Positions 17,430 through 60,131 of a stretch of DNA of 64,000 nt are shown here, in pieces. The first letter of the stretch is position 1; every line of letters begins with the position of its first letter. A program made the translations under genes and the position numbers. The notes below the pieces were generated by a model. That model was not told the DNA's origin, did no database searches, and saw nothing but the letters and a program-made list of their open reading frames with translations. The DNA is from Bispira polyomma. Lineage: Eukaryota. Location: the NCBI GenBank assembly GCA_965649765.1, contig OZ287754.1:35464001-35528000 (forward strand). The letters run 5' to 3'.

Positions 17430-17594
17430 TATAAATGTTGTGTATAAAAATAAACCTAAGCTAAAAAATCGTCCCTAAACTCAGAACATAGAATATATTA
17501 AAAACAATTAAAATCATCTACTAAAAAACACAGGTAGCAACAGCCAGCAATCTCCAAATACAACATGTTCTACACTGCCGGGATGTTTTTCAGA

Positions 17595-18175: not shown

Positions 18176-18189
18176 ATATTATGCTGTAG

Positions 18190-20272: not shown

Positions 20273-23200
20273 TTAGTATGTTACTGTCCTCATTCTCTTC
20301 TTCCATTTCTGTTTACTATTGGAGACATTTTTGTAGTCACTGTTACTACTGTTTTCTGTTGGTATCTTTTTTATGTCCATTTTGTGTGTCAAGTAAGTAA
20401 CAACGATGCAGACAAATCCAAGCATTCCGACTGAACCTCCAACAAAGAATGGAATGTCATAGTTTTGTGTAATGTCAAACATCCAACCTGAAAAAATACA
20501 GCATATGACTTGATGTACATTGGGCTCAACATATGTAGATACAGTATATTAAACAAACGTATGTACTTTTAGATGAGAGCCTAAGGTAAATATGTTTCCT
20601 ACTTAATTCTTAAATTCCACTGTTTTCTATTCTAGATAAATGTTGTTTGTTGGTTTTGATTGAATGATTATTTTTGTACATGTATTAACCAACCTTGAAA
20701 CTCAGAAGTGACTCACCTGTAAATGGGGTAGCTACCATATTCGCAAGTCCTCCAAAGATGTTGGTAATGGCTCTTGTCTTGGCAAAATTCGCAACTCCTG
20801 ATATTTTTACCATAGATAGTAATATTGTTGGAGCGACAAAACCTGAGCCCAAAAAAGCAAATAGTCATCATAGAAGCAATAACACAAATAACTATATTGA
20901 AATCACTGTGGATTTTGCACTAATATATCATAAAGATAAAGCAATAATACCTATTGCATTGGACTAAATTGCATTAGTAACAAAGAGGCTTGCTTAGCAA
21001 AGATGTATCAATATAAATAATATTCTCACTTACATATTTCCAGTCCTTTTAAAATGCATATAAAACATAACCAAATTAATACATAAAATTACCTTGAGCA
21101 AGTCCAAATGATCCTGACAGCAATGCTATTGGCAAAAAATAGCTGAAAAAAGGACATATGAGTGGCACTAAAGACTGTACAAATGATGCAACACCTAATC
21201 CCCAGAATGGATCAAGAAACTCAAATGCCATTAAGATGCTGCAAATTATTCTTGATGTAAGTATCCCAATACCGATGACTGCTATAGTATATCCTGCATA
21301 AGTCAAGTTATATCCAAGAAAGAACAATCTGCTGGGGGTATGATCAAAATAGGTGGCAATGTTAAATCGCATAAATACTATAGCAACAGTAAAAAATATT
21401 ACAGGTTTTATCTTCAGCACCATAAAACTATTGCAAAGACTCTTCAGAAAATTCCTGAAACTTGGTTCAACCTTTCTGGTGAGCTGGGCTTTAACAGGCC
21501 AAAACGTCATTGCTAGTGCAACAGTATTGAGTAATATTCCACTATGCATAAGTAGTGTTCCACGCCATCCAAATGTGTTTAGAAAATAGTTGTTTATGAT
21601 TGGAGACAAGGCATTTCCCACTGGAAGACCACACATGGCCACAGATGTGGCAAAACTTCGATGTTTGTGGAAATGTTCCTGGATAAGAACCATTGCTGCC
21701 AGTGAAGCTAGACTTATACCACAACCTTGTAAAGAGATGTATTTGTTTATAATCAGCATTATAATATACTATATACATTAGAATGAATGTCCGTAAAGGT
21801 CTGATAATTTTTGTCAATCCCTCAATTAGCCAGTATAGTGCACATGGTAAGAATTATACTTTAGATTTACTGGACAAGAAAAAGTTAAGCTACAAATGAA
21901 TAAAATTATCTTGTTTCAGAAAATGTAAAAGACATAATACATTTGACAAAACAACAGCACGTGACAAAACCAAAAAAAAAAAAAAAAAATCACATTTATA
22001 TATTTGTTTGTCGATATATTTGTTTTTATATTTGTTCATTTGTTTGCAATTTTGTAGTTTATGAATATTATTAATAAAATGCTTACCTCCAATGAAGCCA
22101 TATGTGAAGTACAAAATGTAAATACTGGTCGCAAATGCACTTGTAAATATAGCAAATGATAGGATGATACAACCACAAATTGCAATTTTTCTAATCCCAA
22201 ATAGCTCTATCAAGGCACTTCCAAAAATACCTGCAAGGAGTTTCAGAATATAGCAGTTTGTAGTCATCACAAAGTAAAATATTATATGTTTTATATCGTT
22301 TAGAATGAATATTTTTTACTCTCTTTAAAAATGAACAATGAAAATGTATTTGGACAGCTAACAAGTCAATTCCAAATATGTAGCACTTACTTGAACCGGA
22401 TGCAGACACACCAACAATGGAACTAATAAAGCCAGCTGTAGCTTTGGTAGTTTGGAAAGTTTCACTGAAAGTAACGTAGTAGATTCCAAAGGCTAGGTAA
22501 TGGTAGCCCATGATGATATGGAATATGACCACAGAAAGGAGCACAAACCAGGAATCCAAACTTTCATTCTAATGATACAATTGTGAATGATCATTATAGA
22601 TAGATTATCCATATATATATGCATATAAATAAATAGATGACATTAGCCAATGATATCCTAAAGACAGTTTAAATTGGTTGACTATTACAGGTGGTAAAAT
22701 GTTCAGGTTTGACTACACAAAGGTAAATATATTGCGCATCTCTTGCGAGTTTTGGGCCAAAATTCGGTCAATATGCATCCTTATGGCCGAGGATAATGCA
22801 ATTATTTTGTTCGAAGTCCTTGGCTAAAAATTACTTGACAATTGAAAATTGTATTTATTTGACCTGACCCTTTATACATTAATTACCATAAATTTTTCCC
22901 ATACATTGTAAATTCTGTTTGGCACGGATGTAGTTCTGTGGTTGCTTTCTTGTATACAGAGTCAGATACTTTTGCTAGAACTAAAAATAGATGTGATGCA
23001 ATATTCTGCGAATGCTCACTGTGATCCCAGAAGACTAATTTTCAAAGTAATAGACCAATCAGGGAACTGCTCCTAATATAGTGGTTCATTGGGCTGACAT
23101 CTATCGAGTAGTGTGAAAACTAAATCCTGTACATCTGGGAGTTACAAAATGGGGATTTGCTAATGACAATGTAGCACATTGATATAATAAAAAAACTGTT

Positions 23201-30594: not shown

Positions 30595-32300
30595 AATGCA
30601 AAGGCATAACTATCAATAAGGTTGATTTCAAAATCACACAGTTTGCTGACGATATCACTCTTATTCTTGATGGTTAACAAAGCTCTTTGCGGGCTGCTTT
30701 GAACACAATTAAAACTTATGGAACCTACTCAGGGCTTAAGATGAATACCAGTAAAACAAAAATAATTTGGATTGGAAGGAAAAAGTATTCAAAAGACAAG
30801 TTAGCCATAACTTCCAAATTAGAATGGGGTACTGAACACTTTAATTTACTGGGAATTTTATTTTCTGTCAATTTAGAAGAAATTCCATACTTAAATTATT
30901 CTAGTGCTCTAGAAAAAGCTAGTAAACTGATAAATGCTTGGAAGAAACGAGACTTAACTCCACTAGGCAAGATTACAATTATTAAAACCTTTATCTTGTC
31001 ACAGTTCAATCGCCTTTTTATGACTCTTCCATCACCAGGTACAACCTTTTTGAAGCAGATTAAAACAATACTCTTCTCTTATCTTTGGAATAATAAACCT
31101 GACAAAGTTAAGCGTCGATATGTTGTACAGGATTACAAAGATGGTGGTCTTATAATGTTAAATTTAGACTGTCACATTCAGGCAATAAAATTGACCTGGA
31201 TCAGCCGAATTTTTAAAGGTGAATCAACGGCTTGGCTGGAACTTTTCGAAAACACCATATGTGACACTTCTATGCTATTTAAGTTTGGACCTACTTGGTA
31301 TAAAAATATCTGTAGCAATATTTGCAATTCATTCTGGAAAGAAGTATTGGACAGTTGGGCAAAATATTGTGAGTGTATTACTTTCAAAGACAACAATGAT
31401 ATTTTATCTTCACCAATACGGTTTTACAACAAGATTTCTAAGACCACATTATTTTTTCCCAACTGGTATAAACATGGGGTAGTATTTGTTGGAGATCTTA
31501 TTGATCAAAATGGATAATTTTTCTGCCAAAGAGAAATTGAGAGTAACTTTTCCATGAAAATTACAAATTTTCTAGAACACATCAAACTAAAAACTGAAAT
31601 CAACACTTTTATCAGAAAATTTAAGAAAGATAACGCACTTCTCTTTAAACAGCCATGCATTCCGAACTATTTATTACATATGAAGTTTGGAGCGAAAGAT
31701 TTTTATATTATTTTAAATAATATATATTTAGACATGGGTTTAAAAATAAATGGAACAACGAGCTAGAAATAAATATTGATAATTGTACCTGGCAGTATGT
31801 TTTTAAGATCTGCTTCAAAACTATTGAGGACAACTATCTAAAATGGTTTCAGTACAGAATTTTACACCGTATACTTCGTACCCAAAAACTTCTTTACAAA
31901 ATGGGGAAAACAGACTCTCAAAACTGTATGGTTTGCAATGCATCAAACGAATCTTTAAGACACTTATTTTTTCTCTGTCCGTATTATCAAGAATTGTGGC
32001 AAAATCTATAAATATGGATTTCCAGCAAAACAGGTTACAATTTGAAACTGAATTCCCAGGAAATTATTTTAGGATATTTTTTCACAGACAGTACCTTCCT
32101 TCCAATCAATACGATTCTAATTGCTACAAAAAATTCCATATATACCAATTCAAGGAACTCACTGGCCTTCAAAATGTCTGAATTACAAAAAAAAATTTTA
32201 ATTTTATATGAAGAACAAAAACTATTGGCCAAATTGAATTTTAATGAAGAAACATAACATAAAAAAACTGGCATACATTTAAAAGTTTATTGAATTAAAT
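30595..32300 (+). mobile_element. 5'-truncated L1/Tx1-clade LINE (RT C-terminus + zf-RVT)
   Basis: QFADDITL; SGLKMNTSKT; WKKRDLTPLGKITIIKT; YKDGGL; KWFQYRILHRIL; CMVC...HLFFLCP. Confidence 0.88.
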
Positions 32301-40155: not shown

Positions 40156-42382
40156 TCAGTTGCGTAGTTGTGCGTTCTGAACATTCCTCGGTGGTTTGCC
40201 ACAATCTCTCTGGCATATACCATTGCAACAGACTCCCTGAAAACAGGCATCTGAATCAATAACCTGTTCACAAGGTGTTCCAGGTTGGAGTTTAGGGGCA
40301 CATCTTTGGGATTGTCTTTCGCAAAAGAGATACGGTGAGCCACAGCTTGGGTTTCTGGTACTACAAATAGGGCTTGGCTCACAAGCATAGAAATCCTTGA
40401 AATAGATGTTACTGTAGCCGTCTATATTCAGTAAGGATGAGAATGGGAGCATTGGGTTTAAGGCATAATGATAGGAATGCTGGGTGTCATTTAAAATTGT
40501 TCCATCGATTTGTTCAAGCCCAACACCAAGGGCTTTGGTGTCATTTGGATAATCATATTGAGGTCTGAAAGCAGGGTTTCTTTTCTTCTGCACTGATCTC
40601 AGCTGCTCCCAGAGACAATCTAGAAAGGCATGGTGCATGTAAAATACCGGGTCACTTGGTGACACAGGAATATCAGCCATAATTCCTCCTATCCAATTGT
40701 GTACAGCTCCATGGTGACTCTCAAACACAGGTGACACAAACCATGACAGATTTCTAACTGATGTTGCTGACAACATATGGAAGATGGCTTCATCTGACAA
40801 AAGTGCAGGCATAGTGCGAGCAAATGGTGGGGCAACTGTAAGATTGCGATATAAAAAGCGCATCTTCCCTGATGTATCTGGAAATGGAAGGCGCCAGTGT
40901 AAGAAAGGTCCTATTGTGACTTCTCCTATACCATTACCTAGAAAGTCATCTGTCCAAAGTATGGATCTGGTGGCAAGATCATCTCCAAGAGTATAGTCCA
41001 GATTTGAATCCCAGTAGGGTAGACTGACACCATTATCTATGTTGCGAAGGGCGTTTTCAAAGCTGTGTGAAGAAATTTAACTGTAAAGTGAAGAAAATGA
41101 TGAACAATATTTTTGATTTGTGCTCCGATAAAGTTTTTGTTAAAGTTTACCTAATTGTTGATACATTTTATGCAGATACTCATATATTTAATCATAATGG
41201 AATAGAAAATAAAATCAAACAGTTAAACTGTCAAAGACCAAAACGATACAGTTGTTACTTACTGAATGGTATTGAAAAGGCAGGCACTATTTTGTTGTTA
41301 CTGTAGTTATTTGTTACTTACCGTAACAACAGTTCCCTATGGTAACCCAGGAAGGCCGGCCCAAAATGTGCTCCTGGAGCAACCCGAGCCTGATGTGCCC
41401 TTAGAAAGACATCATACATTGACAATCCGTCAACAAATGTATGTTTTAGAATGTTCACTGCTCTGTGAAACCGATACCTTTGCTCATCTGTCATCATCCG
41501 GTATTCCTTTCTCAGTGACCTACTACCCGGGACATTGTTAACTTGCCTTCTGTGTCTCCTTCCTCTTCTACCCTCTGATGAACTTAAAGAATCAAACCAG
41601 TTTTTCTGGTCTACTGTTGGTTTCCATTCATTAACAGTTTTCATATTGTAAGCCCATTCTTTGTACATTTTACATGTCATTTCCAGCATAGCTTTATTCA
41701 TGTGATATTGATGGTGATTTTTGTACATAAAGTTACAAATCTTATCATAATTATTGTTTATATCATACGCAGTGTCTAATTGTACCTTTGAAGATACTCC
41801 ATGGACATATTTCATATCTTTAAAATAATTAGGATCAGTTGCACTATGACGGGGTGTAGTATCACTTTCACTCTTAGAAGGCTTTATATTTTCACTTTCT
41901 ATTTGACCTCCATGAATTACTTCATTGTAATTAATATGGTGTACTTCAACAGAATTTTTTTTTTCTTTGTAACTTACTTTCTGTGGCATTTGGCTTGGTA
42001 CAGAATAATGCGGTTCGTCACTCCCTTCCCTATAATCCACCACAGGTTGCCTCTGCAAATGTCCCCTGTTTTGTACATGGTTTCTATAACCATATGGGAT
42101 ATGTGGATTATATATAGGGTGTAGTTCTTCTCTGCTGTCATATGTGGTATGATCGTGTCCTAGGCTCCATGGATCTTCCTCTGTGTTGTAGTAGGTGTGT
42201 TCTATCCCTGGTCTTTGTAAGTTGCTGTTGTAATATTGGTCTCTATGGTACACTGGACTTGTAGGCCTTTCACTGTAAGACAGATAATACCCTCCATGTT
42301 GGTAATCACTCTCTAAAATCTGAGGTTCTGCATAATTGACTGTAACAAAGAAAATCATACAAAGCTGTAACCATTGCTCCAT
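40156..42382 (-). CDS. Secreted tyrosinase-like (type-3 copper) protein; exons 42382-41322 and 41062-40156
   Basis: Signal peptide MEQWLQLCMIFFVTVNYA; CuA H...AHFGPAFLGYHRELL; a phase-2 GT-AG intron joins R to FENALR...SLPYWDS; CuB HGAVHNWIGG...SPSDPVFYMHHAFLD; Cys-rich C-terminus. Confidence 0.93.
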
Positions 42383-43327
42383 GTTGTACTTATACAAATG
42401 TGTATTTATAGAGATTATGACTTTTACTGAACCTTCTTAACAGTGTGTAACTGACTTGCTATCCGGTATGAGATGTGCTGATATCAACAGGAAATACCAA
42501 CTTTTCTTTGTTTCATATATAAAACTGGTGGCGCCTGTTTTATTGTCTGGCGTGTGTTTGACTGAAAAAGCTCGAATATTTGTCAGATTAAGGCTGTGTA
42601 TTGTTGACTAATTTTAAATGAATTCCCACAGCAAAGGTTGTATAGATTTATATGAATAAACTCAATATTTTTATTAATTACAATGGAGAATAGCTTTACA
42701 TAATAAAAAATCTTTTTGGAATTTATTAAACAAAAATGTTGACAATACAATATAAGGTTAGATCCTAATGCCATGATGCTTGTTATTTCAGTTATATGTC
42801 ACATACAAAGAATATTGGCAGATGTAAGCAATGTAACGTTAATGGCATGTGATCAATGTCCTTTGTGCATTAATGTGAGTGCCTGTCTGACTGCACCGCT
42901 GTCCATATGTTGTCATACATAGCAAAAAAAACTTTGGTGTATAAACAATTCCAGAGATACGCATAAAAATATTTACCAAAAGGGTCACATATTTACCTTG
43001 TATTTGATAGATACTACGATCTCGGTAAAATAATCACTTTTTTCTTGCCCCTTTCAATTTATTATTGAAAGTCTGTAGCAAAATGTTTTGCCAGTGTCCA
43101 AAGATAAAAGATTCAAGTATGTTTGCCATGATATATGTACATTTAATCCTAAGCTTGTGGACGCAATGAACAGAGATAATACCTTTATGATTACACCTTT
43201 TTACTTAGCAGAACATATATTAGTTATTAACAAATACACAGCAAATGCCTTAAAACAGACACAATATTCAATCCAATCTATGTCATTTGTCGGTTTTACT
43301 TGTCATAATATATTAGCTTGGTGTGAC

Positions 43328-46300
43328 TTAATAAGTTGAACCCGCTTGACTGCTGTAGGTAATATTTCCATTGGTAATCAAATTGGTTGCCTCAGTCATG
43401 TTTGGGTTTAGCCCGCTATCACAGGCTGATGATTCAGAGGAATGGACAGCACCTCTTGTAGCAGTGTCCCCACCAGCCACAACCCTGCTCCCCAACCCAC
43501 CAGTGCACAAGTTCATCATTTCTAAGTCTGTAAAAGACTCATCCATTGACTTGGCAGTTAGTGATGTCTTTTGGTCGATCCCACTAGCCCTTCTCTCATC
43601 TCCTTTGTTGGAACGTAAGACTGTGTTTAGGAACTCGTATGCCTTCAGCAAGGCAAAAGAGAACGGTAAAGCCGCCGAACAAGCATATAGTAGAAGATAG
43701 GTTGTTAAATAAACCCATTTAGGTAATGCTTTATTTAACCCTCCTAAAATGTTAATGATTACAAAAGTCACCTCAAATGTAAATGTGATTGCAGTTGTTA
43801 CAGCATATAATTGACTGATAAATATCTCCTTTTCATGTTGTATATTTTGCCTGAGGGTTCTTGAAAGCATGCCGCTGTGGGAAGAAGAACATGTTGTTCT
43901 TGTAAAGAAGTACACGTTTGTAAGGACAGGAATTATCAGGATCAAAATGGAGCAGAATCCTAAGAAGGAATATATATGCTTGTTCACGTTTGAAAAATCT
44001 AATCCACAAGTTCCACTCTCTGAAAATACAAGAGAATTTGATTTTATTAGTTGAAAGTTAAAAAAACTGATAGCTTGAAACATATATTGGATATTTGAAG
44101 TTCTTGTATCACCCACTCTTCTGCTGAGAACTGAAACATAATACATAACCCTTAAATATATACAGAAGTAAAATATTTGGATTGCATATTTAAAAATATA
44201 AGCACGATGATGTTCAGAGCAACGGCAAATTTTTCTTGGCAAAGAGGTAGTTAATTTATGTAATAGTCGTTGGACAATAATTCCATAAACAAATTTATCA
44301 TAATATGTTTTATTGAGGGCATACCTTGATACAAAAGTCTTTTATAGTACAATCTATAGACATTTTCTTCCATATGGACTGTAAAAAGATTGCCCCATTC
44401 TTTTGATATTCCTTTAGAATTACTGAAAAACCTCCATACCAAGCCATCAATGCTTTTGTTTTCTATATGATTCCACAAGCAGGTTACAGAGTCACGTGAT
44501 TCACTTCTCAGCAAAGCCTCAAAGCCATTTGGTATTTGACCGGTCAGTCTCGTTTCTGAGTGAAAGTTGGTTTCGAAAAAAGCTGTGATGTTTTGCAGCA
44601 AAGATTGTATTAGCTGTGTATCGTTGCTGTGGGTAGCAAAGAAACTGGTGAGAGGTGACATAGTATGAGTCTCCATGGGGTGAGAAACCAATCGTATATG
44701 TACAGCACCTGTGAGGAAACATAAGGCAACAAGTGGCAAGCATACTTACAACAATCATCTTAATGATTTAAGGTGATGCTTAAATATGATTAAAGTGTAA
44801 TTTTCAATATAGGTAGGTCACCATTGCAAACTCGACACCAACTAACACTGGTTTAACTGGTTTAAATTCACCAAGTCGTCACCACTACTTAGCAAAAAAA
44901 TTTAATCAAGAAGAAAAATAAATAGTTCATTTCTATCAATGTTATTGCACATTTTGTCTTCTATATTGGAATATATCTAACAGGATGTGTACACGGTTCT
45001 TTCTTGTAGATGTCTGCTATCTTTAGTGGAAGTCTTTGTGGACATGTACATATGTACACATGCAAATGGGCTTATAGTTCTCCTGTTGTGGACATGTGCA
45101 TATGTACACATGCAAGTGGGCTTATAGTTCTCCTGTTGTAGTTTGAGCAAAAATGGAATAAATTTTGTTTATATTGTTAAAATAGTGTAGTTACATTTCT
45201 TGTGTGAAAATACTAAATTAGTGTGAGTTATTTATATGTCAGTAGTGGCGAGTTTGTCATGTTAAAAACGTACTGAGTTTATTGGACTGCAGTGAGTTTG
45301 CCATGTTAAAAACGTGCTGAGCTTATTAGACTGTGGCGAGTTTGTCATGTTATAGGTGTCGAGTTGGTTAGACTGTGACATAGTTTGTCATGTTAAATAG
45401 GTGCCGAGTTGGTTAGACTGTGGCGAGTTTGTCATGTTAAATAGGTGCCGAATTGGTTAGACTGCAGTGAGTTTGTCATGTTAAATAGGTGCTGAGTTTT
45501 TTAGACTGTGGCGAGTTTGTCATGTTAAATAGTACCGAGTTGGTTAGACTATGGTGAGTTAGTCATGTTAAATAGGTACCGAGTTGGTTAGACTGTGGCG
45601 AGTTTGTAGTGTTAAATAGATACCGAGTTGGTTAGACTGTGGTGAGTTTGTAGTGTTAAATAGGTACCGAGTTGGTTAGACTGTGGCGAGTTTGTCATGT
45701 TAAATAGGTGTCAAGTTAGTTAAACTGTGGCGAGTTTGTCATGTTAAATAGGTGCCGAGTTGGTTAGAGTGTGGTGAGTTAGTCATGTTAAATAGGTACC
45801 GAGTTGGTTAGACTGTGGCGAGTTTGTAGTGTTAAATAGGTACCGAGTTGGTTAGACTGTGGTGAGTTTGTAGTGTTAAATAGGTACCGAGTTGGTTAGA
45901 CTGTGGCGAGTTTGTCATGTTAAATAGGTGTCGAGTTAGTTAAACTGTGGCGAGTTTGCCATGTTAAATACGTGCTGACTTTATTAGACTATGACGAATT
46001 TGTCACGTTAAATACATGCTGAGTTTTTTAGACTATGGCAGGTTTGTCATGTTAAATAGGTGCCGAGTTGGTTAGACTGTTGCGAGTTTGTCATGTTATA
46101 TAGGTGCCGAATTGGTTAGACTGTAGCGAGTTTGTCATGTTAAATAGGTGCCGAATTGGTTAGACTGTGGCAAGTTTGTCATGTTAAATAGGTGCCGAAT
46201 TGGTTAGACTGTGGCGAGTTTGTCATGTTAAATACGTGCTGAGCTTGTTAGACTATGGCAAGTTTGTCATGTTAAATAGGTGCCAAATTGGTTAGACTGC

Positions 46301-49300
46301 GGCGAGTTTGTAGTGTTAAATAGGTGTCAAGTTGGTTAGACTGTGGCGAGTTTGTAGTGTTAAATAGGTGTCAAGTTGGTTAGACTGTGGCGAGTTTGTC
46401 ATGTTAAATAGGTGCCGAGTTGGTTAGAGTGTGGTGAGTTAGTCATGTTAAATAGGTACCGAGTTGGTTAGACTGTGGCGAGTTTGTAGTGTTAAATAGG
46501 TACCGAGTTGGTTAGACTGTGGTGAGTTTGTAGTGTTAAATAGGTGTCGAGTTAGTTAAACTGTGGTGAGTTTGTCATGTTAAATAGGTGCCGAGTTGGT
46601 TAGAGTGTGGGGAGTTTGCCATGTTAAATACGTGCTGACTTTATTAGACTATGACGACTTTGTCACGTTAAATACATGCTGAGTTTTTTAGACTATGGCA
46701 GGTTTGTCATGTTAAATAGGTGCCGAGTTGGTTAGACTGTTGCGAGTTTGTCATGTTATATAGGTGCCAAATTGGTTAGACTGTAGCGAGTTTGTCATGT
46801 TAAATAGGTGCCGAATTGGTTAGACTGTGGCAAGTTTGTCATGTTAAATACGTGCTGAGCTTGTTAGACTATGGCAAGTTTGTCATGTTAAATAGGTGCC
46901 AAATTGGTTAGACTGTGGCGAGTTTGTAGTGTTAAATAGGTGTCAAGTTGGTTAGACTGTGGCGAGTTTGTAGTGTTAAATAGGTGTCAAGTTGGTTAGA
47001 CTGTGGCGAGTTTGTCATGTTAAATAGGTGTCAAGTTGGTTAGTCTGTGGTGAGTTTGTAGTGTTAAATAGGTGTAGAGTTAGTTAGACTGTAGTGAGTT
47101 TGTCATGTTACATAGGTACCGAGTTTGTTAGACTGTGGCGACCTTGTCATGTTAAATAGGTGTTAAGTTGGTTAGACTGTGGCGAGTTTGTAGTGTTAAA
47201 TAGGTGTCGAGTTGGTTAGACTATGACAGAGTTTGATTTTGCTGACTGTACATACACCATTATTTCTAGGCAGTCTCAAAGCTTTGCATTAGTTTGGTAA
47301 ATATGATCCATACACTTGTCTATACACTCTATTTGTGGGCGACTATTGTGGAAAAGCTAGCACTAACCAATGGGAGCATTGAGAAGCAAATGTTTATAAT
47401 TAGATTTCTTTTTGTATATATTTGTATTGCTTTTCGGTAGCAGTATACTGCCTTTTTCAAGAACAGATTCGTTGATTATATCAATGCTGTAGCTGTCATT
47501 GATTTTATATTTTTATGCTGTCCATTACTGGATATTTATAGATAGCATTGATAAGGTAGTATGTTTTTTGTCTCACGTTGTTGCAATATACCGCTATTAC
47601 AAGCTAATTATGCACACATGTTTAGGTAATAAAGAGTGGGGGAAACCTAAGCTTTATCATAAAACACGAGTAAAGTTGAAAGTAAAATAAGAACATTTCC
47701 CATTGGTATTTTAAATACCATTCGTGACTTCCTGTTCTAAGGTTTTGTTATTCAATCTATAAAGAACTTAATCCATGGATAAAGTAAACTCAATGGCTAC
47801 ATACCACACACAATTTACTCTTTCATGGAGAAAAACAACACCTGATTTTAACACATTTGTATTACAGTCAACAAGTGTGTAAAATAGTGATGTATAGGTT
47901 TTCAAAGCCCAAAAGAGCCTTTTGAAAGGATGTAGAATATAGTGTGATAAAAAATTGCCTAAAACCCATACGTAATTAAAGTACTGAAATTATATAAAAT
48001 AATTGGTCAGAAGGGCGTGGGAAGGAATATTATGACCCTACATCTGAATAGCCTATTCAGTGCTGGCTGGAGATAGGAAGTTACGATTTAAAGGTATCGA
48101 TTCCAGAAAAACATGTAAAGATTCAACGAGGTGATTCATGTTATGAGGAGGTCAAAAGTGTAGGTCTTTGAAATCCTTCCAGTGCTACAAAAGAGTTCTA
48201 GTCCTTGGTTTAAATTGGGTTCATTAGGGAGTTTGCAGGAAATGAATGTTGTTGAATAGCTAAAGCTCATTGAGAGGTTTTGTCCATGAGCTCACGTCTA
48301 TAGGAGACAGCCCCTCAACGCCCAGTCTTACTTAGTGGTGAAGCTTTAGTTGTCAGTTCACAGCTACATTCAAATGAATAGGTCATAAAGATGAGCCCCG
48401 TCTGTATTAATGTCTGCAACATCTTGAATTGATTGGATGTATTTATTCTGGCGTACCTTGGCGCAGGTTAATTGATTAAAATGACTTCCATTTTAGGCTG
48501 ATCCTGACTTAATAGCTTTCATAGAAACTATACTGATTTTGTGATACCCTATCCTTATATTATGGTTGATATTGTTCGCTGGCAATTAACATCTACTCTT
48601 ATATATTTAAGGCTAGCATGTTAGGTTTAAGAGCTTGACAGGTGATTATTATCCTCACGCATTCATTAATATTTGTATATCTATCTATAGAATAATGGAG
48701 TGATAATATTTGTATATCCATCTATATAATAATAGAGTGACATTCTCTTCATATTTTGTAAAATCCATTGATTAATTTTAAGAAGAATGACATGAATTGA
48801 TGATAGATAGATAAATTGTATGTGTATGATGCATATTTAATGGTATTGCACTTTAAGATTACATAATGGCCACAATTATACAGCAATCGTATCTACAAAA
48901 CAGTTTGTGCCCAAAACAAACCAGTTGCAAATATCATAAAAGTTGGACAGCGGTATTCCCAGGCCTACTGTAATTTCCTGGTGGATAAAATTACCAGTGT
49001 GATCGTGTAATGTAATCATCCCTAGGAGACGAGGGCATGAAGTACAGGGTTGTGTGGTTACATGTAGTGTAATCATCCCTAGGATACGAGGGTATGAAGT
49101 ACAGGGTTGTGTGGTTACATGTAATGTAATCATCCCTAGGAGACGAGGGCATGAAATACAGGGTGGTATGGTTACATGTAGTGTAATCATCCCTAGGAGA
49201 CGAGGGCATGAAGTACAAGGTTGTGTGGTTCCATGTAATGCAATCATCCCTAGGAAACGAGGGCACAAAGTACAGGGTTGTGTGGTTCCATGTAATGCAA

Positions 49301-50888
49301 TTATCCCTAAAAGACGAGGGCATGAAGTACAGGGTTGTGTGGTTACATGTAATGTAATCATCCCTAGGAGACGAGGGCATGAAGTACAGGGTTGTGTGGT
49401 TCCATGTAATGCAATTATCCCTAGAAGACGAGGGCATGAAGTACAGGGTTGTGTGGTTACATGTAATGTAATCATCCCTAGGATACGAGGGCACAAAGTA
49501 CAGGGTTGTGTGGTTACATGTAATGCAATCATCCCTAGGATACGAGGGTATGAAGTACAGGGTTGTGTGGTTACATGTAATGTAATCATCCCTAGGATAC
49601 GAGGGCATGAAATACAGGGTGGTATGGTTACATGTAGTGTAATCATCCCTAGGAGACGAGGGCATGAAGTTCAGGGTGGTATGGTTACAAGTTATTGGAC
49701 AAAATTAATTTGAGACCAAATAATCATATCGAATCACAAGATATCATTTTATTATCCACTGTGACGTTTGATACGGACCGGCTGATTCAATAAACCGTAT
49801 CACTCCACTGAAAATCATACTGTAGTAACAAGAATTTTTAAGCTTTTAAGTGTGGTTAACATAATATATAAACGTTAAGCAATATGGTATTATATTATAC
49901 TCGATTTTTAGTTTGGTTTAAGTTTGTATTTGAAGCTAATTCTTCAAGGTAACAAATCAATACCTTTTGTTTATATTGACCAGGTTGCCGTGTTTTTAAT
50001 ATTTTAGGACTTTTAGTGTTGTTTGTATGAGATTTTTACCTGTATAGGCATAATAATTACATAATGTAAGTGGATAATAAAATAAAAACAACCCATTGGA
50101 TTTGTATATTGAAAAAGATATGACTCAAGAAGATGAAACACACAAAACTCGGCTTAATGGGCTCGTATTGCATTGATCTTCTTTTGTCATATATTTTTAA
50201 ATACACACCACTCGGGTGTTTTACTATTTTAATGCTGTGAAATTGTGCAGTTTGGATGAGAAATTTACATAGTTTTGTCGTTATAATGTCACAGCCACAC
50301 AAATGTTACACATTACAATGTTCTTTTCCCTAATATGAACCTCTTGCCCAAATACTCATAGATTCCCATCATTCTGGTAAGAGTCTTACCTCTTTTATCC
50401 GAATATTCAGCCCAACCATAGATAGGTCCCGTGAACACCATGCCTACAAATAGCACCATACCCCACAACAGTATCTTAGTGTTGATGTCAGAAAACATAG
50501 AACTGTATTCATTTGGCAGGACTATTTTAAAAAACCTGAAAACAATAAAAACAAAATATGGTTCAACAACTAGTTTTGAATTTTAATTTAAATGTTTTTT
50601 TTTCTACATCTAAATCCTTTACATTCTATCTACAACATTACTTGAAGTAATAAAATTAAGTTTTTTATTTTTTATTGAATTGGTATTCATGTGTACTACT
50701 ATAGTCAAGTGAATGAAACAATGTATTCTGTACAATAGTAACAGTTTCGGTGTAGAATGGGTTAATTTTGCAAGTAAACACAAACCTTTCCATGGAGGCC
50801 AAAGCCAAGAACCACATCCACGTGCCAAGAGTGATGCTAGAAATAAGGCCAAAGAGTTGGCAGGACACAGTTCCAAACAGCCATCGCC
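43328..50888 (-). CDS. Class A (rhodopsin-like) GPCR with opsin-like motifs; exons 50888-50786, 50535-50390, 44019-43328; 5' part not resolved
   Basis: The spliced product reads RWLFGTVSCQLFGLISSITLGTWMWFLALASMER/FFKIV...GPIYGWAEYSDKR/ESGTCGLDF...TM5-TM7. All splice sites are GT-AG and phase-consistent, with an intron inside the ERF arginine codon. Confidence 0.8.
45250..47230. repeat. 44-bp minisatellite (gttaaataggtgccgagttggttagactgtggcgagtttgtcat) in a GPCR intron
   Basis: About 45 tandem units; each unit is a dimer of two related ~22 bp halves. Confidence 0.97.
49005..49690. repeat. 60-bp minisatellite in a GPCR intron
   Basis: About 11 units of atcatccctaggagacgagggcatgaagtacagggttgtgtggttacatgtaatgta-like sequence. 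Confidence 0.97.
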
Positions 50889-51666
50889 CTGGAAATACAA
50901 TTGAGAACTATCATATCATTGGTAATAGCCCAATCACACCTACACGTGTTGGAGCTACGTGTGTGTGACGTTTTGAAACGTAGTAGATGGTAATGCCAAA
51001 GTAAGGATCCCTGGTGTGTTCGTTCCATGACGATGCTTAACGAATTATATCTTTCCAGAAACGTCTCCATTTGGTCGGTTGCAACGATTACTTCAAACTG
51101 TTTAAAATAATTGTGACAGAGCACTATGTTTCTCAAAAACGTCTCCACTCGTCTGTATAAGTAACATAACATAGCATAACGTAGCAGTAAGTAGTGAGGT
51201 CGTCTCCACTCGTTTTTATTTGTTGTGCAATGTTTTAGTAGGTAGCAAAGAGGAGCAGAATGCAGCCATAAGTAACATACAGTAAATCTACGTAGTAGTA
51301 AGTAATGGTATCCTACCAGTAAAATGATTAATTTTTTCCCCCGCTGCGTGTGTAGAAGTATCAAATCGTCACAAAAATGTCAAAATGTTTTGTGAAAATG
51401 ACGTCACTGTGACATGTAACTATATGATCAGCCGTCACTTAATAATTTTAAATTGGCACTCACTTACAAAGGATAATCAGCAAAGCTGGGTTTGGAGAAA
51501 GCACGGTTATACAATAATTTTCATACCAATCAAAACAAGACAACTTCAGGCACCCTGCTCTCACTAACTTTTTGGAGGTATTTTTAGGACAATGAGGTAT
51601 ATGTATATAAAATACTATGAAAATGAACATTAACATTTTCTGCATCAGTATTTCCGAAATAACAGA

Positions 51667-53515
51667 ACTACTACTATTAAGGCCCGGGTAAAGACACAAT
51701 TGTCAATGCCAAAAAAGATAATGCCAGGATTATAATGCCAAAGATAATGCCAGGATTATAGTGCCCAATTTGTTAAAAGCCAGATATAATGCCAGAATTA
51801 TAATTCCAGATTTTTCACGTAAAGAAGTATGAGACTGGGTGAGTGAATCAATAGTGTGAAGTGGGTGTGGCACACATGTTATAGCCCCTCCTCACTCCCC
51901 CCTTATTCCAGTAGAAGGTTTGAGGTCTTGTGAACTTGTGGGGGGCATTTGCATATCAGCCCCTCATTACTAAATTGTTAATATTTTCTGGAATAATTGT
52001 TTTGATTTTTAAAATTTAAAGAGCATAATGTGTGCATGCACATTTGTCCCTTTTTACCTCCTCCCCACACACTGTTTCTAATTTCAGTAGAAGTTTTGAC
52101 ATCTTATGAACTTGGGGCATTTGCATATCAGCCCCTCATTACTAAATTGTTAATATTTTCTGGAATAATTGTTTTGATTTTCAAAAATGAAAGAGCTTAA
52201 TCTGTGCACACACATTTGTCCCTTTTTACCCCCTCCCCACACACTGTTTCTCATTCCAGAAAAAGGGTTTTTGATGTGTGTTAGATATCTGGGTGTGGGT
52301 ATTCTATATCGTGGGTGTTTATTACCTTTATCAAATTTCTGAATAAATGGGGCTATTGAAAAAACCTTCTTGATCCATATTATCAGGCGTTTAATTTTAT
52401 ATCAAATAAGTCCAGATTTATTACTCTGTACAATGAATTTTTTTATTTTCCAGAAAATATGCAAAGCTTGTTCAACGTTTGAACAAGTCAGTTTGCATGT
52501 TTGTTTGTCCGTCCCAATTCAGTCTTGACCAGACAGCTTGCTTTCTCCACTTAATTCCCTTTGTGCTATTGAGTGATTTCTGTAAACTAGCATACAAAAT
52601 CTTTCTAACTTTCTTAATAATGGTGTGTTTTTCACAAGTCAAAAACCTTCTTGATAAGAATTACCAGACGTTTATTTTGATATCAAATTTGTACACCTTT
52701 ACTACTAAATTATATGTAATGACTTTTTTGTCATGTAGAGCTAATTCACTGTTTGAATAAGTTTTTCAAACGGTGTCGGCCCAAATGCATTCTAGACTAC
52801 ACAGCTTGATTAAGCCCCTCTTCTTTCAGAGCTTTTAAAAAAAACTTAGAAACTTCAAGTTTTCTTAAAAATTAAGTGTTTTTTAAAATTTAAAATCTAG
52901 CATCACCAGCAGTTTCATTGGCATGTTACGGCGCTAAAGATGATACTAAATATGGCTATATGTAATCTAAAAACTCTATTCCTTTAAAATTCCAGATTTG
53001 GTCAGTTTATTACTCCAAAGCTAGCTCTCAACTTGTTCACTTTTGATCAATCATAAAGGGTCAGTAAATTGTATTTTGTGTATTCATTGGGCTTAATCTC
53101 TTTTAAAATAACTTACAAATTACAAATGATTGTAACTTTCTTAATAATGAACTACCCTACAAACTGGCAATGCTTGTAACTTTCTTAATAATGAAGAGTT
53201 TTTAAAATTTTAAAACCAGCTTCATCAGCACTTTTGAGTCGTTTAAGCTGGTACTAAATATGGCTTTATTTAATTTAGAAACTCTATTCTTTTTAAAAAT
53301 TCACATTTATTTACTTGATTAAGATTTAGCCCACCATATATTCACTTGTAATCACACATCGTTAAAGGGCCATGGTGAATGATATTTGTGTTATCATTTG
53401 AATCTATAAATCTCGAAATGCCTGTGATTTTATTGATAATTAGTGTATCTAACTCATTTAAAACTAATGTACTTAACACATTTTTAAAAACCTGCTTAAT
53501 CTGCACAGAACATTA

Positions 53516-53595
<80 letters not shown>

Positions 53596-54819
53596 AATAA
53601 ACATATCTTTATTTATATTAATAAAACAAATCTAAATTTTTAAAAACAATTTTATTAAACGTATGCATATCAGACACTGATGAACTTGGAGAAAAATCAT
53701 CATTTTTATCAGTTTCTTATAAAATTTCTTCACTCTCTTCATTGGCATCACTGTCTTTATCATCCGGTTCCCCACTGTCTACTGTTTTCACCATCCGATT
53801 CCCTGCTGTCTGAACTGTCTTCACCATCGGGTCCCCACTGTCTGAACTGTCTTCGCCACCGTTTTCCCCGCTGTCTGTACTGTCTTCACCATTCAGTTCC
53901 CCGCTGCCGACTGTCTTCACCATCCGGTTCCCTGTTGCCTGTACTGTCTTCACTATCCGGTTCCCTGTTGTCTGTACTGTCTTCACCATCGGTTTCCCTG
54001 TTGTCTGTACTGTCTTCACTATCGGGTTCCTGTTGTCTGTACTGTTTTCACCATCGGATTCCCTGTTGTCTGTACTGTCGTCACCATTAAATTCCTCATT
54101 GTCTGTACTTGCATCACTATCAATAAGATCATCAAACAGCTGATAATTGCGATGTACAGCTAACTTTAGAGCTTTTCTGAAGTTATAATCCTTTTCCTCC
54201 GTGAGATTTTCAACCTCTTCCATGATTTCATTGTGTATGGTACTGTTTTTCAACTTACGGGTTGTAAGCACAATATCTTTGTACTTTTTCACAATAAACT
54301 TTTTATATTTGTAAAGTAAATCATCAGTAGCTTTCTGCCGTGATTCAAAGTTGGAGTTCCCATCTTCTTCATATTCTGTAACTAATTGACCATATTCGTC
54401 ATCGTATGCATTGTAAGCCTCATTGACAATATCATCCCATCCTGATTCATCATCACTTTCCTCATTAAACCTTGACTTTTTAGAGACTTGCCCTTCGTCT
54501 TTTGGACATCCTCTTTTAAAATGTTTCTGTAAATCCATTTGTGAGGAAAATAGCAATCCGCAGTCGATACAAGAACACTGCGTGGATTGCTGCTTCCCCA
54601 TGTTGGTACCAGACATACAGGAGCACTTTAATGGTTGAGGTTTATCCATGATGTTGTCACGTTGACTGCAAACTGCTGAATGACTCGATCCTTTTCTTTT
54701 ATTTACTTTTAAGACATCCGTCTTCAATCGATCGTCATCCGGGGTTTTTTGTTTAAGATCCACCAATAAATACCCATAAGGTACTTTGGTTGGTCGTTTA
54801 AATTTATTTAAGAACTGCT
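51667..54819 (-). repeat. Left arm of the giant inverted repeat (reverse complement of 56131-59208)
   Basis: Mirror ORFs in the track (52479-52760+ and 58124-58405- give identical peptides; 53717-54766- pairs with 56183-57186+). The match ends at aatttatttaagaactgct (54801-54819). Confidence 0.97.
53717..54819 (-). pseudogene. Mirror copy of the ATPase 3' portion (5'-truncated, reading frame open)
   Basis: QFLNKFKRPTKVPYGYLLVDLKQKTPDDDRLK runs in frame into CIDCGLLFSSQMDLQKHFKRGC, an acidic region and 30-bp repeats. Confidence 0.85.
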
Positions 54820-54820
54820 T

Positions 54821-55249
54821 TAACTCCAGTAAATAGCAGCAATAGCACCAGAAGTAGCACCAATAGCACCAATAACCTTAGAAATAGCACCAATAGCACC
54901 ACAAATAGCACCAATAGCACCACAAATAGCAGCAATGACATACAAAATAGCACCAATAGCACCACTAATAACACCAATGACACACAAAGTAGCACAAAGT
55001 AGCACCAATAGCCTTAGAAATAGCAACAATAGCACCACAAATAACACCAATAGCTATTAGTGCTATTGGTGCTATTTGTGGTGCTATTGGTGCTACTTCG
55101 TGTGTCATTGGTGCTATTTTGTGTGTCATTGGTGCTATTTCGTGTGTTATTGGTGCTATTTGTGGTGATATTGGTGCTATTTCTAAGGCTATTGGTGCTA
55201 GTGCTATTGGTGCTACTTCTGGTGCTATTGCTGCTATTTACTGGAGTTA
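54821..55249. repeat. Central hairpin of AATAGCACC-based minisatellite
   Basis: taactccagtaaatagcagcaatagcacc... is mirrored by ...ggtgctattgctgctatttactggagtta; the strand flips at AATAG|CTATT (55053/55054). Confidence 0.92.
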
Positions 55250-55375
55250 TTTCTGCATATTTTTGGTGATTTTAATTTAACTTGATTATTGTGAACAATT
55301 CGAACATGAAAAAACTATAAAAGACAAAATTGATGGGGATAAGTTAATTTCTATTGTACACATGAAAGAGTCAAG

Positions 55376-57186
55376 ATGAAAAAAACATGTCCACAGTGCC
55401 ACAAGACATTTGCTAGACCTTATACATATAGAAAGCACATGTTAGAACATCATAACACGTTCATCAAACCTGAGTGGAAAAGAAATGGCATGCTTAGAGA
55501 GTCATATGAAACATATGGAGTACCACTAGAAATAGCACCACCAACAGCACCACCAATAGCCCCTCAAATGGCACCTGAAATAGCACCAAAGGAAGTACAA
55601 GGATCCGTTACAACATATGCAGCGAAGCTTGAAGCATCTAACACTAAAATTAACAGTGCTAAGCAAGTGGAGAACTTTAAATTCCAACACCCATTTACGA
55701 TGATTGTAGCAGGTCCCACTTCCTGTGGCAAAACAACGTGGATAAAGACTTTGCTACAACAGGTAAACACAATGATCAACCCAGCCCCTTCGAGAATCGT
55801 TTGGTTTTACAAGAGATGGCAACCCATGTACACTGAGATAAATCAAACCATCGGTGACGTAGAATTTGTTCAGGGAATCACTGAAAGAGAACCAGACGGT
55901 CGGCCTTCCCTGTATATCTACGATGACTTATTAAAAGATACAACAAAAAACAACGACATATGCGAAATGTATACTGAAGGATCTCACCACTGTAGTCTGA
56001 GTGTGATATGTTTACTCCAGAACCTGTACAATAAAGGAAAAGAAAACAGGACAATGAATCTAAATTAAAAATCCACGTGATCAGCAACAAGTATCAGTCT
56101 TGGCAAGACAGATGTATCCGGGTAATTCACAGCAGTTCTTAAATAAATTAAACGAGCAACCAAAGAACCTTATGGGTATTTATTGGTGGACCTTAAACAG
56201 AAAACCCCGGATGACGATCGATTGAAGATGGATGTCTTAAAAGTAAATAAAAAGAAACAATCGAGTCATTCAGCGGTTTGCAGTCAATGCGACAACATCA
56301 TGGATAAACCTCAACCATTAAAGTGCTCCTGTATGTCTAGTACCAACATGGGGAAGCAGCAATCCACGCAGTGTTCTTGTATCGACTGTGGATTGCTATT
56401 TTCCTCACAAATGGATTTACAGAAACATTTTAAAAGAGGATGTCCAGAAGACGAAGGGCAAGTCTCTAAAAAGTCAAGGATTGATGAGGAAGGTGATGAT
56501 GAATCAGGATGGGATGATATTGTCAATGACGCTTACAATGCACACGACGAATATGGTCAATTAGTTACAGAATATGAAGAAGATGGGAACTCCAACTTTG
56601 AATCACGGCAGAAAGCTACTGACGATTTACTTTACAAATATAAAAAGTTTATTGTGAAAAAGTACAAAGATATTGTGCTTACAACCCGTAAGTTGAAAAA
56701 CAGTACCATACACAATGAAATCATGGAAGAGGTTGAAAATCTCACGGAGGAAAAGGATTATAACTTCAGAAAGCTCTAAAGGTAGCTGTACATCGCAATT
56801 ATCAGCTGTTTGATGATCTGATGCAAGTACAGACAACGAGGAATTTAATGGTGACGACAGTACAGACAACAGGGAACCCGATAATGAAGACAGTACAGAC
56901 AACAGGGAAACCGATGGTGAAGACAGTACAGACAACAGGGAACCGGATAGTGAAGACAGTACAGGCAACAGGGAACCGGATGGTGAAGACAGTAGGCAGC
57001 GGGGAACTGAATGGTGAAGACAGTACAGACAGTGGGGAAAACGGTGGCGAAGACAATTCAGACAGTGGGGACCCGATGGTGAAGACAGTTCAGACAGCAG
57101 GGAATCGGATGGTGAAAACAGTAGACAGTGGGGAACCGGATGATAAAGACAGTGATGCCAATGAAGAGAGTGAAGAAATTTTATAA
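55376..57186 (+). pseudogene. Polinton/Maverick packaging ATPase (A32/FtsK-HerA type) with an N-terminal C2H2 finger and a C-terminal zinc finger plus acidic domain; frameshifted
   Basis: HPFTMIVAGPTSCGKTT (Walker A), LYIYDDL (Walker B), EGSHHCSLSVICLLQNLY...RTMNLN, then across frameshifts KNPRDQQQVSVLARQMYPG and ATKEPYGYLLVDLKQKTPDDDRL. These motifs are characteristic of the Polinton/adintovirus ATPase. Confidence 0.88.
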
Positions 57187-57310
57187 GAAACTGATAAAAA
57201 TGACAACAATTTTTCTCAGAGTTCATCAGTGTCTGATATGCATACGTTTAATAAAATTGTTTTTAAAAATTTAGATTTGTTTTATTAATGTAAATAAAGA
57301 TATGTTTATT

Positions 57311-57368
<58 letters not shown>

Positions 57369-59208
57369 TAATGTTCTGTGCAGATTAAGCAGGTTTTTAA
57401 AAATGTGTTAAGTACATTAGTTTTAAATGAGTTAGATACACTAATTATCAATAAAGTCACAGGCATTTCGAGATTTATAGATTCAAATGATAACACAAAT
57501 ATCATTCACCATGGCCCTTTAACGATGTGTGATTACAAGTGAATATATGGTGGGCTAAATCTTAATCAAGTAAATAAATGTGAATTTTTAAAAAGAATAG
57601 AGTTTCTAAATTAAATAAAGCCATATTTAGTACCAGCTTAAACGACTCAAAAGTGCTGATGAAGCTGGTTTTAAAATTTTAAAAACTCTTCATTATTAAG
57701 AAAGTTACAAGCATTGCCAGTTTGTAGGGTAGTTCATTATTAAGAAAGTTACAATCATTTGTAATTTGTAAGTTATTTTAAAAGAGATTAAGCCCAATGA
57801 ATACACAAAATACAATTTACTGACCCTTTATGATTGATCAAAAGTGAACAAGTTGAGAGCTAGCTTTGGAGTAATAAACTGACCAAATCTGGAATTTTAA
57901 AGGAATAGAGTTTTTAGATTACATATAGCCATATTTAGTATCATCTTTAGCGCCGTAACATGCCAATGAAACTGCTGGTGATGCTAGATTTTAAATTTTA
58001 AAAAACACTTAATTTTTAAGAAAACTTGAAGTTTCTAAGTTTTTTTTAAAAGCTCTGAAAGAAGAGGGGCTTAATCAAGCTGTGTAGTCTAGAATGCATT
58101 TGGGCCGACACCGTTTGAAAAACTTATTCAAACAGTGAATTAGCTCTACATGACAAAAAAGTCATTACATATAATTTAGTAGTAAAGGTGTACAAATTTG
58201 ATATCAAAATAAACGTCTGGTAATTCTTATCAAGAAGGTTTTTGACTTGTGAAAAACACACCATTATTAAGAAAGTTAGAAAGATTTTGTATGCTAGTTT
58301 ACAGAAATCACTCAATAGCACAAAGGGAATTAAGTGGAGAAAGCAAGCTGTCTGGTCAAGACTGAATTGGGACGGACAAACAAACATGCAAACTGACTTG
58401 TTCAAACATTGAACAAGCTTTGCATATTTTCTGGAAAATAAAAAAATTCATTGTACAGAGTAATAAATCTGGACTTATTTGATATAAAATTAAACGCCTG
58501 ATAATATGGATCAAGAAGGTTTTTTCAATAGCCCCATTTATTCAGAAATTTGATAAAGGTAATAAACACCCACGATATAGAATACCCACACCCAGATATC
58601 TAACACACATCAAAAACCCTTTTTCTGGAATGAGAAACAGTGTGTGGGGAGGGGGTAAAAAGGGACAAATGTGTGTGCACAGATTAAGCTCTTTCATTTT
58701 TGAAAATCAAAACAATTATTCCAGAAAATATTAACAATTTAGTAATGAGGGGCTGATATGCAAATGCCCCAAGTTCATAAGATGTCAAAACTTCTACTGA
58801 AATTAGAAACAGTGTGTGGGGAGGAGGTAAAAAGGGACAAATGTGCATGCACACATTAAGCTCTTTAAATTTTAAAAATCAAAACAATCATTCCAGAAAA
58901 TATTAACAATTTAGTAATGAGGGGCTGATATGCAAATGCCCCCCACAAGTTCACAAAACCTCAAACCTTCTACTGGAATAAGGGGGGAGTGAGGAGGGGC
59001 TGTAACATGTGTGCCACACCCACTTCACACTATTGATTCACTCACCCAGTCTCATACTACTTTACGTGAATTTGAAAAATCTGGCATTATAATTCTGGCA
59101 TTATATCTGGCTTTTAAAAAGATTGGGCACTATAATCCTGGCATTATCTTTTTTGGCATTATCATTTTGTCATTACAATTGTGTCTTTACCCGGGCCTTA
59201 ATAGTAGT
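56131..59208 (+). repeat. Right arm of the giant inverted repeat
   Basis: Reverse complement of 51667-54819, including the (TA)n tract and the ~170 bp internal tandem duplication. Confidence 0.97.
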
Positions 59209-60131
59209 AACAGACCAGCTGACACATATACAACTTCAGCCACTATCCCATTAGGCTTTCCAAGGAACGAAAACTTTGTACTATTGATGAAAGTCAAATT
59301 GAACTACTTCCATTAGTCAGAGTTTTAACTAAAACATAACACATTTGCACAGATAAAGTATTGATAATCGAGTACCAAAAAGAAAACCAATCATATCTTT
59401 CTGCAACAGACAAAAACGTGTAGATTTGAACATCACTATGTTGAAACGCATTTTGTAACAACTAAAGATAGGGTGATTGCTTTTATGTTCAAATGCTTCG
59501 TCAGTTAAACAAACTGATAATTTCCCTGTTAATTATCTAATTTTAAGCATCCACTTTCAAGCATAATCTTATAATTAATTAATATATATTAATCAATGTC
59601 TTGAAAGGTTGTACAAGGGCTATACATAGTGTCTTTGTTAATTTTTCTTCAGCAGGTTTGATACTTAATCTCACTAAGTTAAGTGCCAAAGAAAATCAAT
59701 GGGTTTCCTGCCGGTAGAGCCATCATGACAGAAGTCATGACAATGAATAATATCATTTATCACTCCTCAGATTGTGATTTCCCCATTATGGGAACTATTG
59801 GGAAAGCTGTACTTAAGTTTGTGTCATTCTGTCTTGACTGTCACACTACAGGTGTTTATGAAGGTACTTCTAAACTCACTTGTTAAAAAACACCAAGTTA
59901 CTTACAGTTTCTTCTCCAATATAATATCACCCAAAACCTGGTGTCATGTCATGAAATGTAATAAGGTAGAAATAATCTGGTTTTGGTTGTCATTTTGGTT
60001 ATTTTAGGCTACATTTTGGTTGACAAATGATATTATCCCCTACTATTTATTTATTAAATATTGTTTTTGTATTTATCAAATATGTAAAGAATTTGGTATT
60101 GATTGTGATATCAAGTTTAATCCAGTTAAAG

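Follow-up and report, generated by a model that had tools for sequence, protein, structure and literature searches.

A decayed palindromic insertion made of two copies of one Polinton/Maverick-like element end in Bispira polyomma, with mosaic divergence between its arms

A 64,000-nucleotide stretch of the Bispira polyomma genome (GenBank assembly GCA_965649765.1, contig OZ287754.1, positions 35,464,001 to 35,528,000 of the forward strand) was analysed, and is called the window throughout, with positions counted from its first letter. At 51667-59208, we found a palindromic insertion of ~7.5 kb that consists of two inverted copies of one Polinton/Maverick-like element end, and which was inserted into the host DNA with a 6-bp target-site duplication (TSD). 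This insertion is a real and unusual defective derivative, and the new finding is that the divergence between its two arms is mosaic. As for its origin, we see an even prospect that the following holds as a whole chain, namely that it is one old, decayed, non-autonomous, and one-ended palindromic derivative of a Polinton/Maverick-like element, which arose by fold-back during replication.

From the sequence alone, an original prediction had laid out the insertion as A'-B'/B-C-A, with A' and A being long inverted arms, B' and B two short tracts that meet at the centre, and C a segment lying on the right side only. Both self-alignment and re-alignment of the arms with MAFFT gave this same layout at the same coordinates (Table 1). 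A gapped self-comparison with blastn displayed the inverted arms, with 51669-54819 aligned to 59209-56131 over 3161 columns at 95.7% identity when gaps are included, the arms being 98.4% identical at aligned bases. The MAFFT alignment contained 3020 matches, 48 mismatches (1.56%), and 12 indel events over 95 columns. Moreover, a seeded repeat search returned ungapped complementary blocks of 99-100% between 51814-54804 and 56145-59070. The left half of the insertion is thus the reverse complement of the right half minus the 881-bp segment C, just as had been claimed, and C has no counterpart on the left. Likewise, the description of the insertion as two copies of one end is correct, though the similarity between the copies is uneven along their length. 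No further copy of any part of the element was found in the 64-kb window by self-blastn, and the flanking DNA on the left and right of the insertion is unrelated to each other. The window itself contains no N runs and no lower-case (soft-masked) letters.

The boundaries of the insertion are well marked at both ends. Here, the order inward is the same on either side, and comprises the TSD (AACAGA), a reiterated ACT trinucleotide, a shared stretch, and about seven copies of a 14-nt repeat. The intact 6-bp TSD that had been predicted is therefore present on both sides, and a 6-nt direct repeat would arise by chance in <1% of random placements, even with a slack of ±2 nt at both ends. A 2-nt offset between the bounds of the alignment and those of the TSD is explained by the number of trinucleotides, which is (ACT)3 at the left terminus but (ACT)2 at the right. 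Judging from their sequence, the termini together with the 6-bp TSD support a fit with Polinton/Maverick-type integration.

The arms were predicted to run deep into coding DNA, specifically the 3' half of an ATPase gene, and this is what we see, with the left arm holding only the 3' part of the gene. By Pfam and the alignment of relatives, the gene is a predicted FtsK/HerA-type (A32/IVa2-like) packaging ATPase gene, of which the right side carries a full-length but broken copy and the left side a 5'-truncated copy. The first open piece of the full-length copy, which has an N-terminal C2H2 finger, a short IAP-type repeat, and both the Walker A and B motifs, scored 24.5 bits against PF04665 (cut-off 22.8) and 22.8 bits against PF02456 (cut-off 21), and PF04665 also matches all 20 of the 20 aligned ATPase relatives. 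Segment C contributes the 5' part of the gene, and thereby the N-terminal C2H2 finger, the IAP-type repeats, and Walker A and B. Conversely, the truncated left copy lacks Walker A and B, and retains the final third of the ATPase domain together with a C2H2-like motif and a tail that is acidic and built from 33-nt repeats. On the forward strand, the relatives are collinear from ~55385 to ~56550-56755, though on the reverse strand only from ~54820 down to ~54100. Moreover, five uninterrupted relatives of 415-550 aa, one of which represents 68 member sequences, carry the ATPase part together with the tail found in the arm. From these collinear alignments and uninterrupted relatives, it follows that the gene crosses the C/A boundary, and that this boundary falls inside the ATPase domain. 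The possibility that the open reading frame (ORF) of the arm is an independent gene was ruled out, as the alignment of the relatives identifies it as the 3' part of the ATPase gene.

The two copies have fared differently. On the right, the full copy has come apart into three open pieces, and its nominal frame contains four internal stops before the end of the second piece. Five indels separate it from the left copy in the coding part that they share, and the length of four of these is not divisible by three. Over the 196 codons that are open in the same frame in both copies, synonymous divergence (pS) is 0.064 and nonsynonymous divergence (pN) is 0.025. As for the relatives themselves, no close one was found among 5.8 billion proteins, the best sharing 70% identity, and those with names are from bivalves (Mytilus, Mercenaria, and Ruditapes), which have the highest reported load of regions derived from Polintons or Polinton-like viruses. 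No stand-alone truncated relatives of the ATPase were found in the protein data, where there were only five matches, all of full length. Sequence searches for relatives of solved structure, made with the single protein and with a 20-sequence profile, gave only generic P-loop and zinc-finger noise.

Apart from the ATPase gene, no recognisable gene is encoded in the insertion. Among the ORFs of at least 93 aa that were scanned against Pfam, no polymerase was found, and the longest ORF in the 7.5 kb is 349 aa. Similarly, no ORF of the element matched the rve integrase in Pfam, nor is there room for one, and neither the ORF list nor Pfam revealed ORFs for capsid proteins or an adenain-like protease. 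In the outermost ~2 kb of either arm, the ORFs are all short, of low complexity, and without a Pfam family, and a TA microsatellite is also present there. An Rfam scan over the whole window gave no match. Because a polymerase and an integrase are lacking, the element is, by its predicted gene content, a non-autonomous derivative and not an autonomous Polinton.

The centre of the insertion (54821-55249) is composed of 9/21/63-nt tandem units, which are in opposite orientation on the two sides of the axis. Since such arrays might simply look alike, a chance meeting of one repeat family in two orientations was considered for the B'/B junction, and was ruled out. Here, with gaps being free, B aligns collinearly to the reverse complement of B' at 91-96% identity, as against 62% between different units within one array, and B' is for this reason a true inverted copy of B. 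In addition, the outer 45 nt of B and B' are identical. Folded as single-stranded DNA, the centre forms an almost complete hairpin (−187 kcal/mol, z = −30.7), within which the hairpin of B'/B is 200 bp. A scan of the centre for bacterial-type promoters and terminators re-found only the hairpin, although such a scan is not meaningful for a eukaryote. We also observed that the repeat coding for IAP-type peptides near the N-terminus of the ATPase (55530-55588) has the same 9-nt motif as B and B', in the B' orientation, and this coding repeat and the array upstream of the gene are therefore related.

The junctions on the two sides of the centre differ. On the left, the outer end of B' meets the inner end of A' with one extra base between them and no microhomology, whereas on the right C intervenes between B and A, and the 881-bp asymmetry begins 196 bp from the symmetry axis. 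The original prediction placed the fold-back point at 55053/54, attributed the asymmetry to a subsequent deletion of C, and viewed C as a spacer that stabilises the palindrome. The symmetry axis does lie exactly between 55053 and 55054, with no spacer. The deletion is one of three options that are not separable in the window, the other two being a second template jump and a single junction at 54820. A second jump fits equally well as a later deletion, and so does the single junction, which would suffice by itself if B'/B had pre-existed in the parent. A stabilising role for C as a spacer is not evident, given that B'/B still folds into its hairpin.

More conspicuously, the divergence between the two halves is strongly mosaic along their length. 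Beginning from the centre, B and B' are 4-9% diverged, the inner 0.5 kb of the arm has 21 mismatches in 500 positions, and the next 0.7 kb has 11 in 697. This is followed by 57331-58830, with only 2 mismatches in 1500 positions and no indels, after which the terminal 0.38 kb has 14 mismatches in 371 positions along with indels in the 14-nt repeats, and the tips reach ~4-10%. Across the four arm segments, the heterogeneity is highly significant (chi-square p ~1e-11). A single fold-back followed by decay, as originally proposed, predicts uniform divergence, and the mosaic excludes one recent fold-back with uniform decay. In its simplest explanation, the mosaic implies an old palindrome whose halves were ~4% apart until gene conversion from arm to arm evened out a single tract of 1.5-2 kb. 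Alternatively, the halves come from two variant genomes, and the selection signal and the open truncated copy lean this way, though both are too weak to decide.

With these features in view, the following course of events could have produced the insertion. The parental end would have had a trinucleotide terminus with 14-nt repeats, ~2 kb of non-coding DNA, and a packaging-ATPase gene pointing outward. In the tandem-repeat tract just upstream of this gene, a protein-primed polymerase with strand-displacing activity (or else a replication intermediate that had broken) would have changed strands and copied back over the end it came from, so that the halves became joined head to head in a mini-genome whose two termini were equivalent. 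The 881-bp asymmetry might stem from a further jump during this event or from a deletion at a later time. The mini-genome was presumably inserted by an integrase acting in trans, as the original prediction had soundly reasoned, since the element encodes none of its own. Thereafter, the halves would have diverged to ~4%, the 1.5-2 kb tract of the arms would have been re-homogenised, and the only complete gene would have decayed, leaving what is today a dead insertion. A strand switch in strand-displacement replication is the best mechanism that we can infer, by analogy with snap-back defective genomes, phi29-polymerase chimeras, and the palindromic derivatives of other protein-primed replicons, albeit not a proven one.

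Several observations weigh against this course of events. The mosaic divergence demands an extra step in the form of gene conversion, or else two variant parents. The truncated left copy of the ATPase gene has stayed open for ~367 codons while the full copy on the right is broken, an asymmetry that by itself is not significant (~0.1), and the pN/pS of 0.39 for the shared codons is significant only marginally (p = 0.048, with 19 differences). Together, this ratio and the open left copy hint that a part of the divergence arose under selection, and before insertion. The spacer-less symmetry at the centre is equalled by 3.2% of all possible B' × B joins, which for a random join of two periodic arrays amounts to moderate improbability only. 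Moreover, the termini read 5'-(ACT)n...(AGT)n-3', and so have the opposite strand sense to the 5'-(AGT)2//(ACT)2-3' of vertebrate elements.

One other explanation is an internal deletion in an autonomous parent whose native terminal inverted repeats (TIRs) were ~3.2-3.4 kb and included the 3' part of the ATPase gene, with no fold-back taking place at the birth of this copy. Long TIRs of this sort have a precedent in the active Polintons of butterflies, where TIRs of ~2 kb hold whole genes (bioRxiv 10.1101/2025.02.07.637071), and the rise in divergence toward the inner end of the arm is the pattern expected for long TIRs that are homogenised from the outside in. Yet, few parts of the arms are as diverged as the terminal 0.2-0.4 kb, contrary to such homogenisation, and TIRs measured in vertebrates are 46-1447 bp. 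Furthermore, the deletion must have cleared everything between the TIRs to the nucleotide and left behind the spacer-less 10-nt palindrome (the 3.2% above), and homologous recombination between inverted repeats does not favour deletion. The question of how part of a gene came to be duplicated in inverted orientation is also only pushed back onto the parent. We think this explanation unlikely.

The mosaic arms bring up a second explanation, in which the halves originate from two variant genomes replicating in one cell that were joined head to head and then integrated. The joining would have come about through a template switch between molecules, or through end joining after both had broken in the fragile tandem array. 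Indeed, the mosaic resembles the divergence between recombining variants, with 6.4% synonymous divergence in the inner coding part as against 0.13% over 1.5 kb of non-coding mid-arm. The pN/pS ratio, the long open frame of the left copy beside the broken right one, and the absence of C from the left half, which on this account was already missing there, all agree with separate histories for the halves. However, the two molecules must have broken or switched in matching register within the array, the 19 differences yield no more than a marginal selection signal, and a single gene-conversion tract explains equally well why 1.5 kb of non-coding DNA at 99.9% identity lies beside coding DNA at 95%. 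On balance, a two-parent origin strikes us as decidedly unlikely.

Thirdly, host replication or repair, and not replication of the element, could have rearranged a longer integrated element in situ, whether by a fold-back inversion or by break-induced copying between its own TIRs. Fold-back inversions via short hairpins are a known host process (PMC7467729), and a rearrangement in place would retain the TSD and both termini. Against this, the whole interior must have been lost and symmetrically replaced, and the newly copied inner part should be less diverged than the original TIRs, which is the opposite of what we observed, making an in situ rearrangement very unlikely. Lastly, long-read and amplified libraries often contain palindromic artefacts, but a fold-back assembly or sequencing chimera made from a palindromic long read is hardly credible and for practical purposes excluded, as the palindrome stops precisely at two termini between unrelated flanks, is bracketed by the 6-bp TSD with no N runs, and has arms that differ by 48 substitutions, 12 indels, and the 881-bp segment.

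Returning to a fold-back origin for this one copy, the original prediction had gone further and proposed a parasitic or defective-interfering satellite class of Polintons. This proposal is without support, as there is one copy, its only complete gene is broken, and no close or truncated relatives were found in the protein data. That a heritable lineage of palindromic, one-ended mini-Polintons has existed by using the polymerase and integrase of a helper is, in our estimation, rather improbable. Were there such a lineage, then the mosaic divergence, the hint of purifying selection, and the open truncated copy may reflect evolution within the lineage or recombination of variants, and not decay in place. 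It is also conceivable that transcription of the long inverted repeat yields a hairpin RNA, and that this RNA supplies the small-RNA silencing of related Polintons.

Table 1. Coordinates of the features that make up the palindromic insertion, in window positions
Feature	Position	Strand	Basis
Left TSD, AACAGA	51661-51666
Left terminus: (ACT)3, then about seven 14-nt repeats (ATAATGCC core)	51667-51810
Arm A' (3153 bp), inverted copy of arm A	51667-54819		Repeat finding, self-alignment, MAFFT
172-bp tandem duplication in the non-coding outer arm	51905-52266; mirror 58625-58942
Near-identical tract, 0.13% divergence, indel-free	left 52054-53553; right 57331-58830		Alignment
5'-truncated packaging-ATPase copy, predicted; open frame throughout	53717-54819	-	ORFs, relatives
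One extra base at the A'/B' junction, without microhomology	54820
B' (233 bp), tandem 9/21/63-nt array, inverted collinear copy of B	54821-55053
Symmetry centre: perfect 10-nt palindrome, spacer-less, across 55053/55054	55049-55058
B (196 bp), tandem array upstream of the ATPase gene	55054-55249
Segment C (881 bp), unique: ATPase leader and 5' part	55250-56130	+	Self-alignment, Pfam, relatives
Full-length packaging-ATPase copy, predicted (A32/IVa2 type with long tail, ~600 codons), broken	55376-57186	+	Pfam, relatives
Arm A (3078 bp)	56131-59208		Repeat finding, self-alignment, MAFFT
Right terminus, mirror of the left, with (ACT)2	59080-59208
Right TSD, AACAGA	59209-59214

Elsewhere in the window, two tandem arrays lie just upstream of the insertion, one at 45400-47300 with at least 38 copies of 44-nt units and a GC skew of 0.25-0.35, and the other at 48892-49818 with 12 copies of 57-nt units. 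A third array, made of ~15 tandem units of 25-27 nt (17510-18200), overlaps ORFs of 141 and 192 aa. Among the host genes is a tyrosinase gene at 40156-42397 on the reverse strand, of which the last large exon matches PF00264 and an upstream exon of 359 aa ends at the start of copper-A. The best database relative of the tyrosinase exon has 49% identity, and the named matches are from a brachiopod and a nematode. There is also an exon of a major-facilitator-superfamily transporter (PF07690) at 21076-21759 on the reverse strand. At 9752-10749 on the reverse strand, two adjacent ORFs have a PF00589 tyrosine-recombinase domain and a PF13102 SAM-like N-domain, and belong to a Crypton/DIRS-like or other such mobile element located 41 kb from the palindrome. 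Additional long ORFs, one of 276 aa at 30687-31517 on the forward strand and two of 304 and 162 aa at 43328-44739 on the reverse strand, match no Pfam family, and may be transposon remnants or lineage-specific exons.

The insertion resembles Polintons/Mavericks (Orthopolintovirales) in its A32/IVa2-type ATPase, 6-bp TSD, terminal inverted repeats, and reiterated-trinucleotide termini. Intact Mavericks of vertebrates are 12.7-24.6 kb, with TIRs of 46-1447 bp, 6-bp TSDs, and 5'-(AGT)2//(ACT)2-3' termini (PMC8097293), whereas here the element is 7.5 kb with arms of 3.1-3.4 kb, lacks the pPolB, integrase, protease, and capsid genes, has its terminal motif in the opposite strand sense, and is a palindrome throughout save for 881 bp. 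There is also a likeness to the apparently active Polintons of butterflies, as these have inverted terminal duplications that reach into core genes and hence two gene copies per insertion (bioRxiv 10.1101/2025.02.07.637071). However, the butterfly elements are full-length and their TIRs contain whole genes (hexon and adenain), while in the present element the arm cuts the gene mid-way and there is no interior.

By definition, a snap-back defective viral genome is a palindrome of one end (PMC13506859). Like the snap-back and copy-back genomes of RNA viruses, which are one-end palindromes formed by strand switching of the polymerase and have replication signals at both ends, the insertion has inverted halves from the same end and a symmetry that passes through a spacer-less centre, but its divergence is not uniform. 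Moreover, the viral genomes are made by RNA polymerases and do not integrate, and interference has been shown for them and not here. As regards strand switching by a DNA polymerase, >85% of the chimeras produced by phi29 DNA polymerase are inverted with intervening deletions, and their junctions have 0-21 nt of complementarity (PMC1855051). This polymerase is a strand-displacing family-B enzyme from the protein-primed group, though its chimeras are artefacts of in vitro amplification and the present element is natural.

Foldback (FB-type) transposons likewise have long inverted arms with tandem repeats and a short or absent middle. Their arms are non-coding repeat arrays, whereas those of the present element include part of a viral packaging gene and come with a Polinton-like TSD and termini. 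Among protein-primed replicons, Kikuchi and colleagues are said to have described in 1985 that deletion derivatives of the yeast killer linear plasmid consist of one end, as a hairpin or an inverted dimer. Such derivatives would be alike in representing one end of a protein-primed linear replicon, with a terminal protein at the plasmid ends, yet they are extrachromosomal, cytoplasmic, and without a TSD, unlike the integrated element with its TSD. Similarly, the adenovirus genomes from incomplete particles that Daniell and Mullenbach studied in 1978 reportedly repeat the sequences of one end in inverted orientation. This would be a likeness to a protein-primed relative, though the adenovirus genomes are encapsidated, not endogenous, and probably unrelated in sequence. 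To our knowledge, nobody has yet directly observed the protein-primed replication that Polintons/Mavericks are presumed to start from their ends.

As a single decayed copy, the insertion is an instructive specimen and not evidence for a new class. If the proposed origin is true, then a one-end copy-back present in a chromosome would be a natural footprint of strand-displacement replication, and a molecule with two copies of one terminus would suffice for integration. It would also link Polintons with the palindromic defective genomes of adenoviruses and protein-primed linear plasmids. The long, gene-bearing TIRs of insect Polintons may arise by the same strand-switching process, in which case a single process may be behind both the extension of TIRs and the formation of full palindromes.

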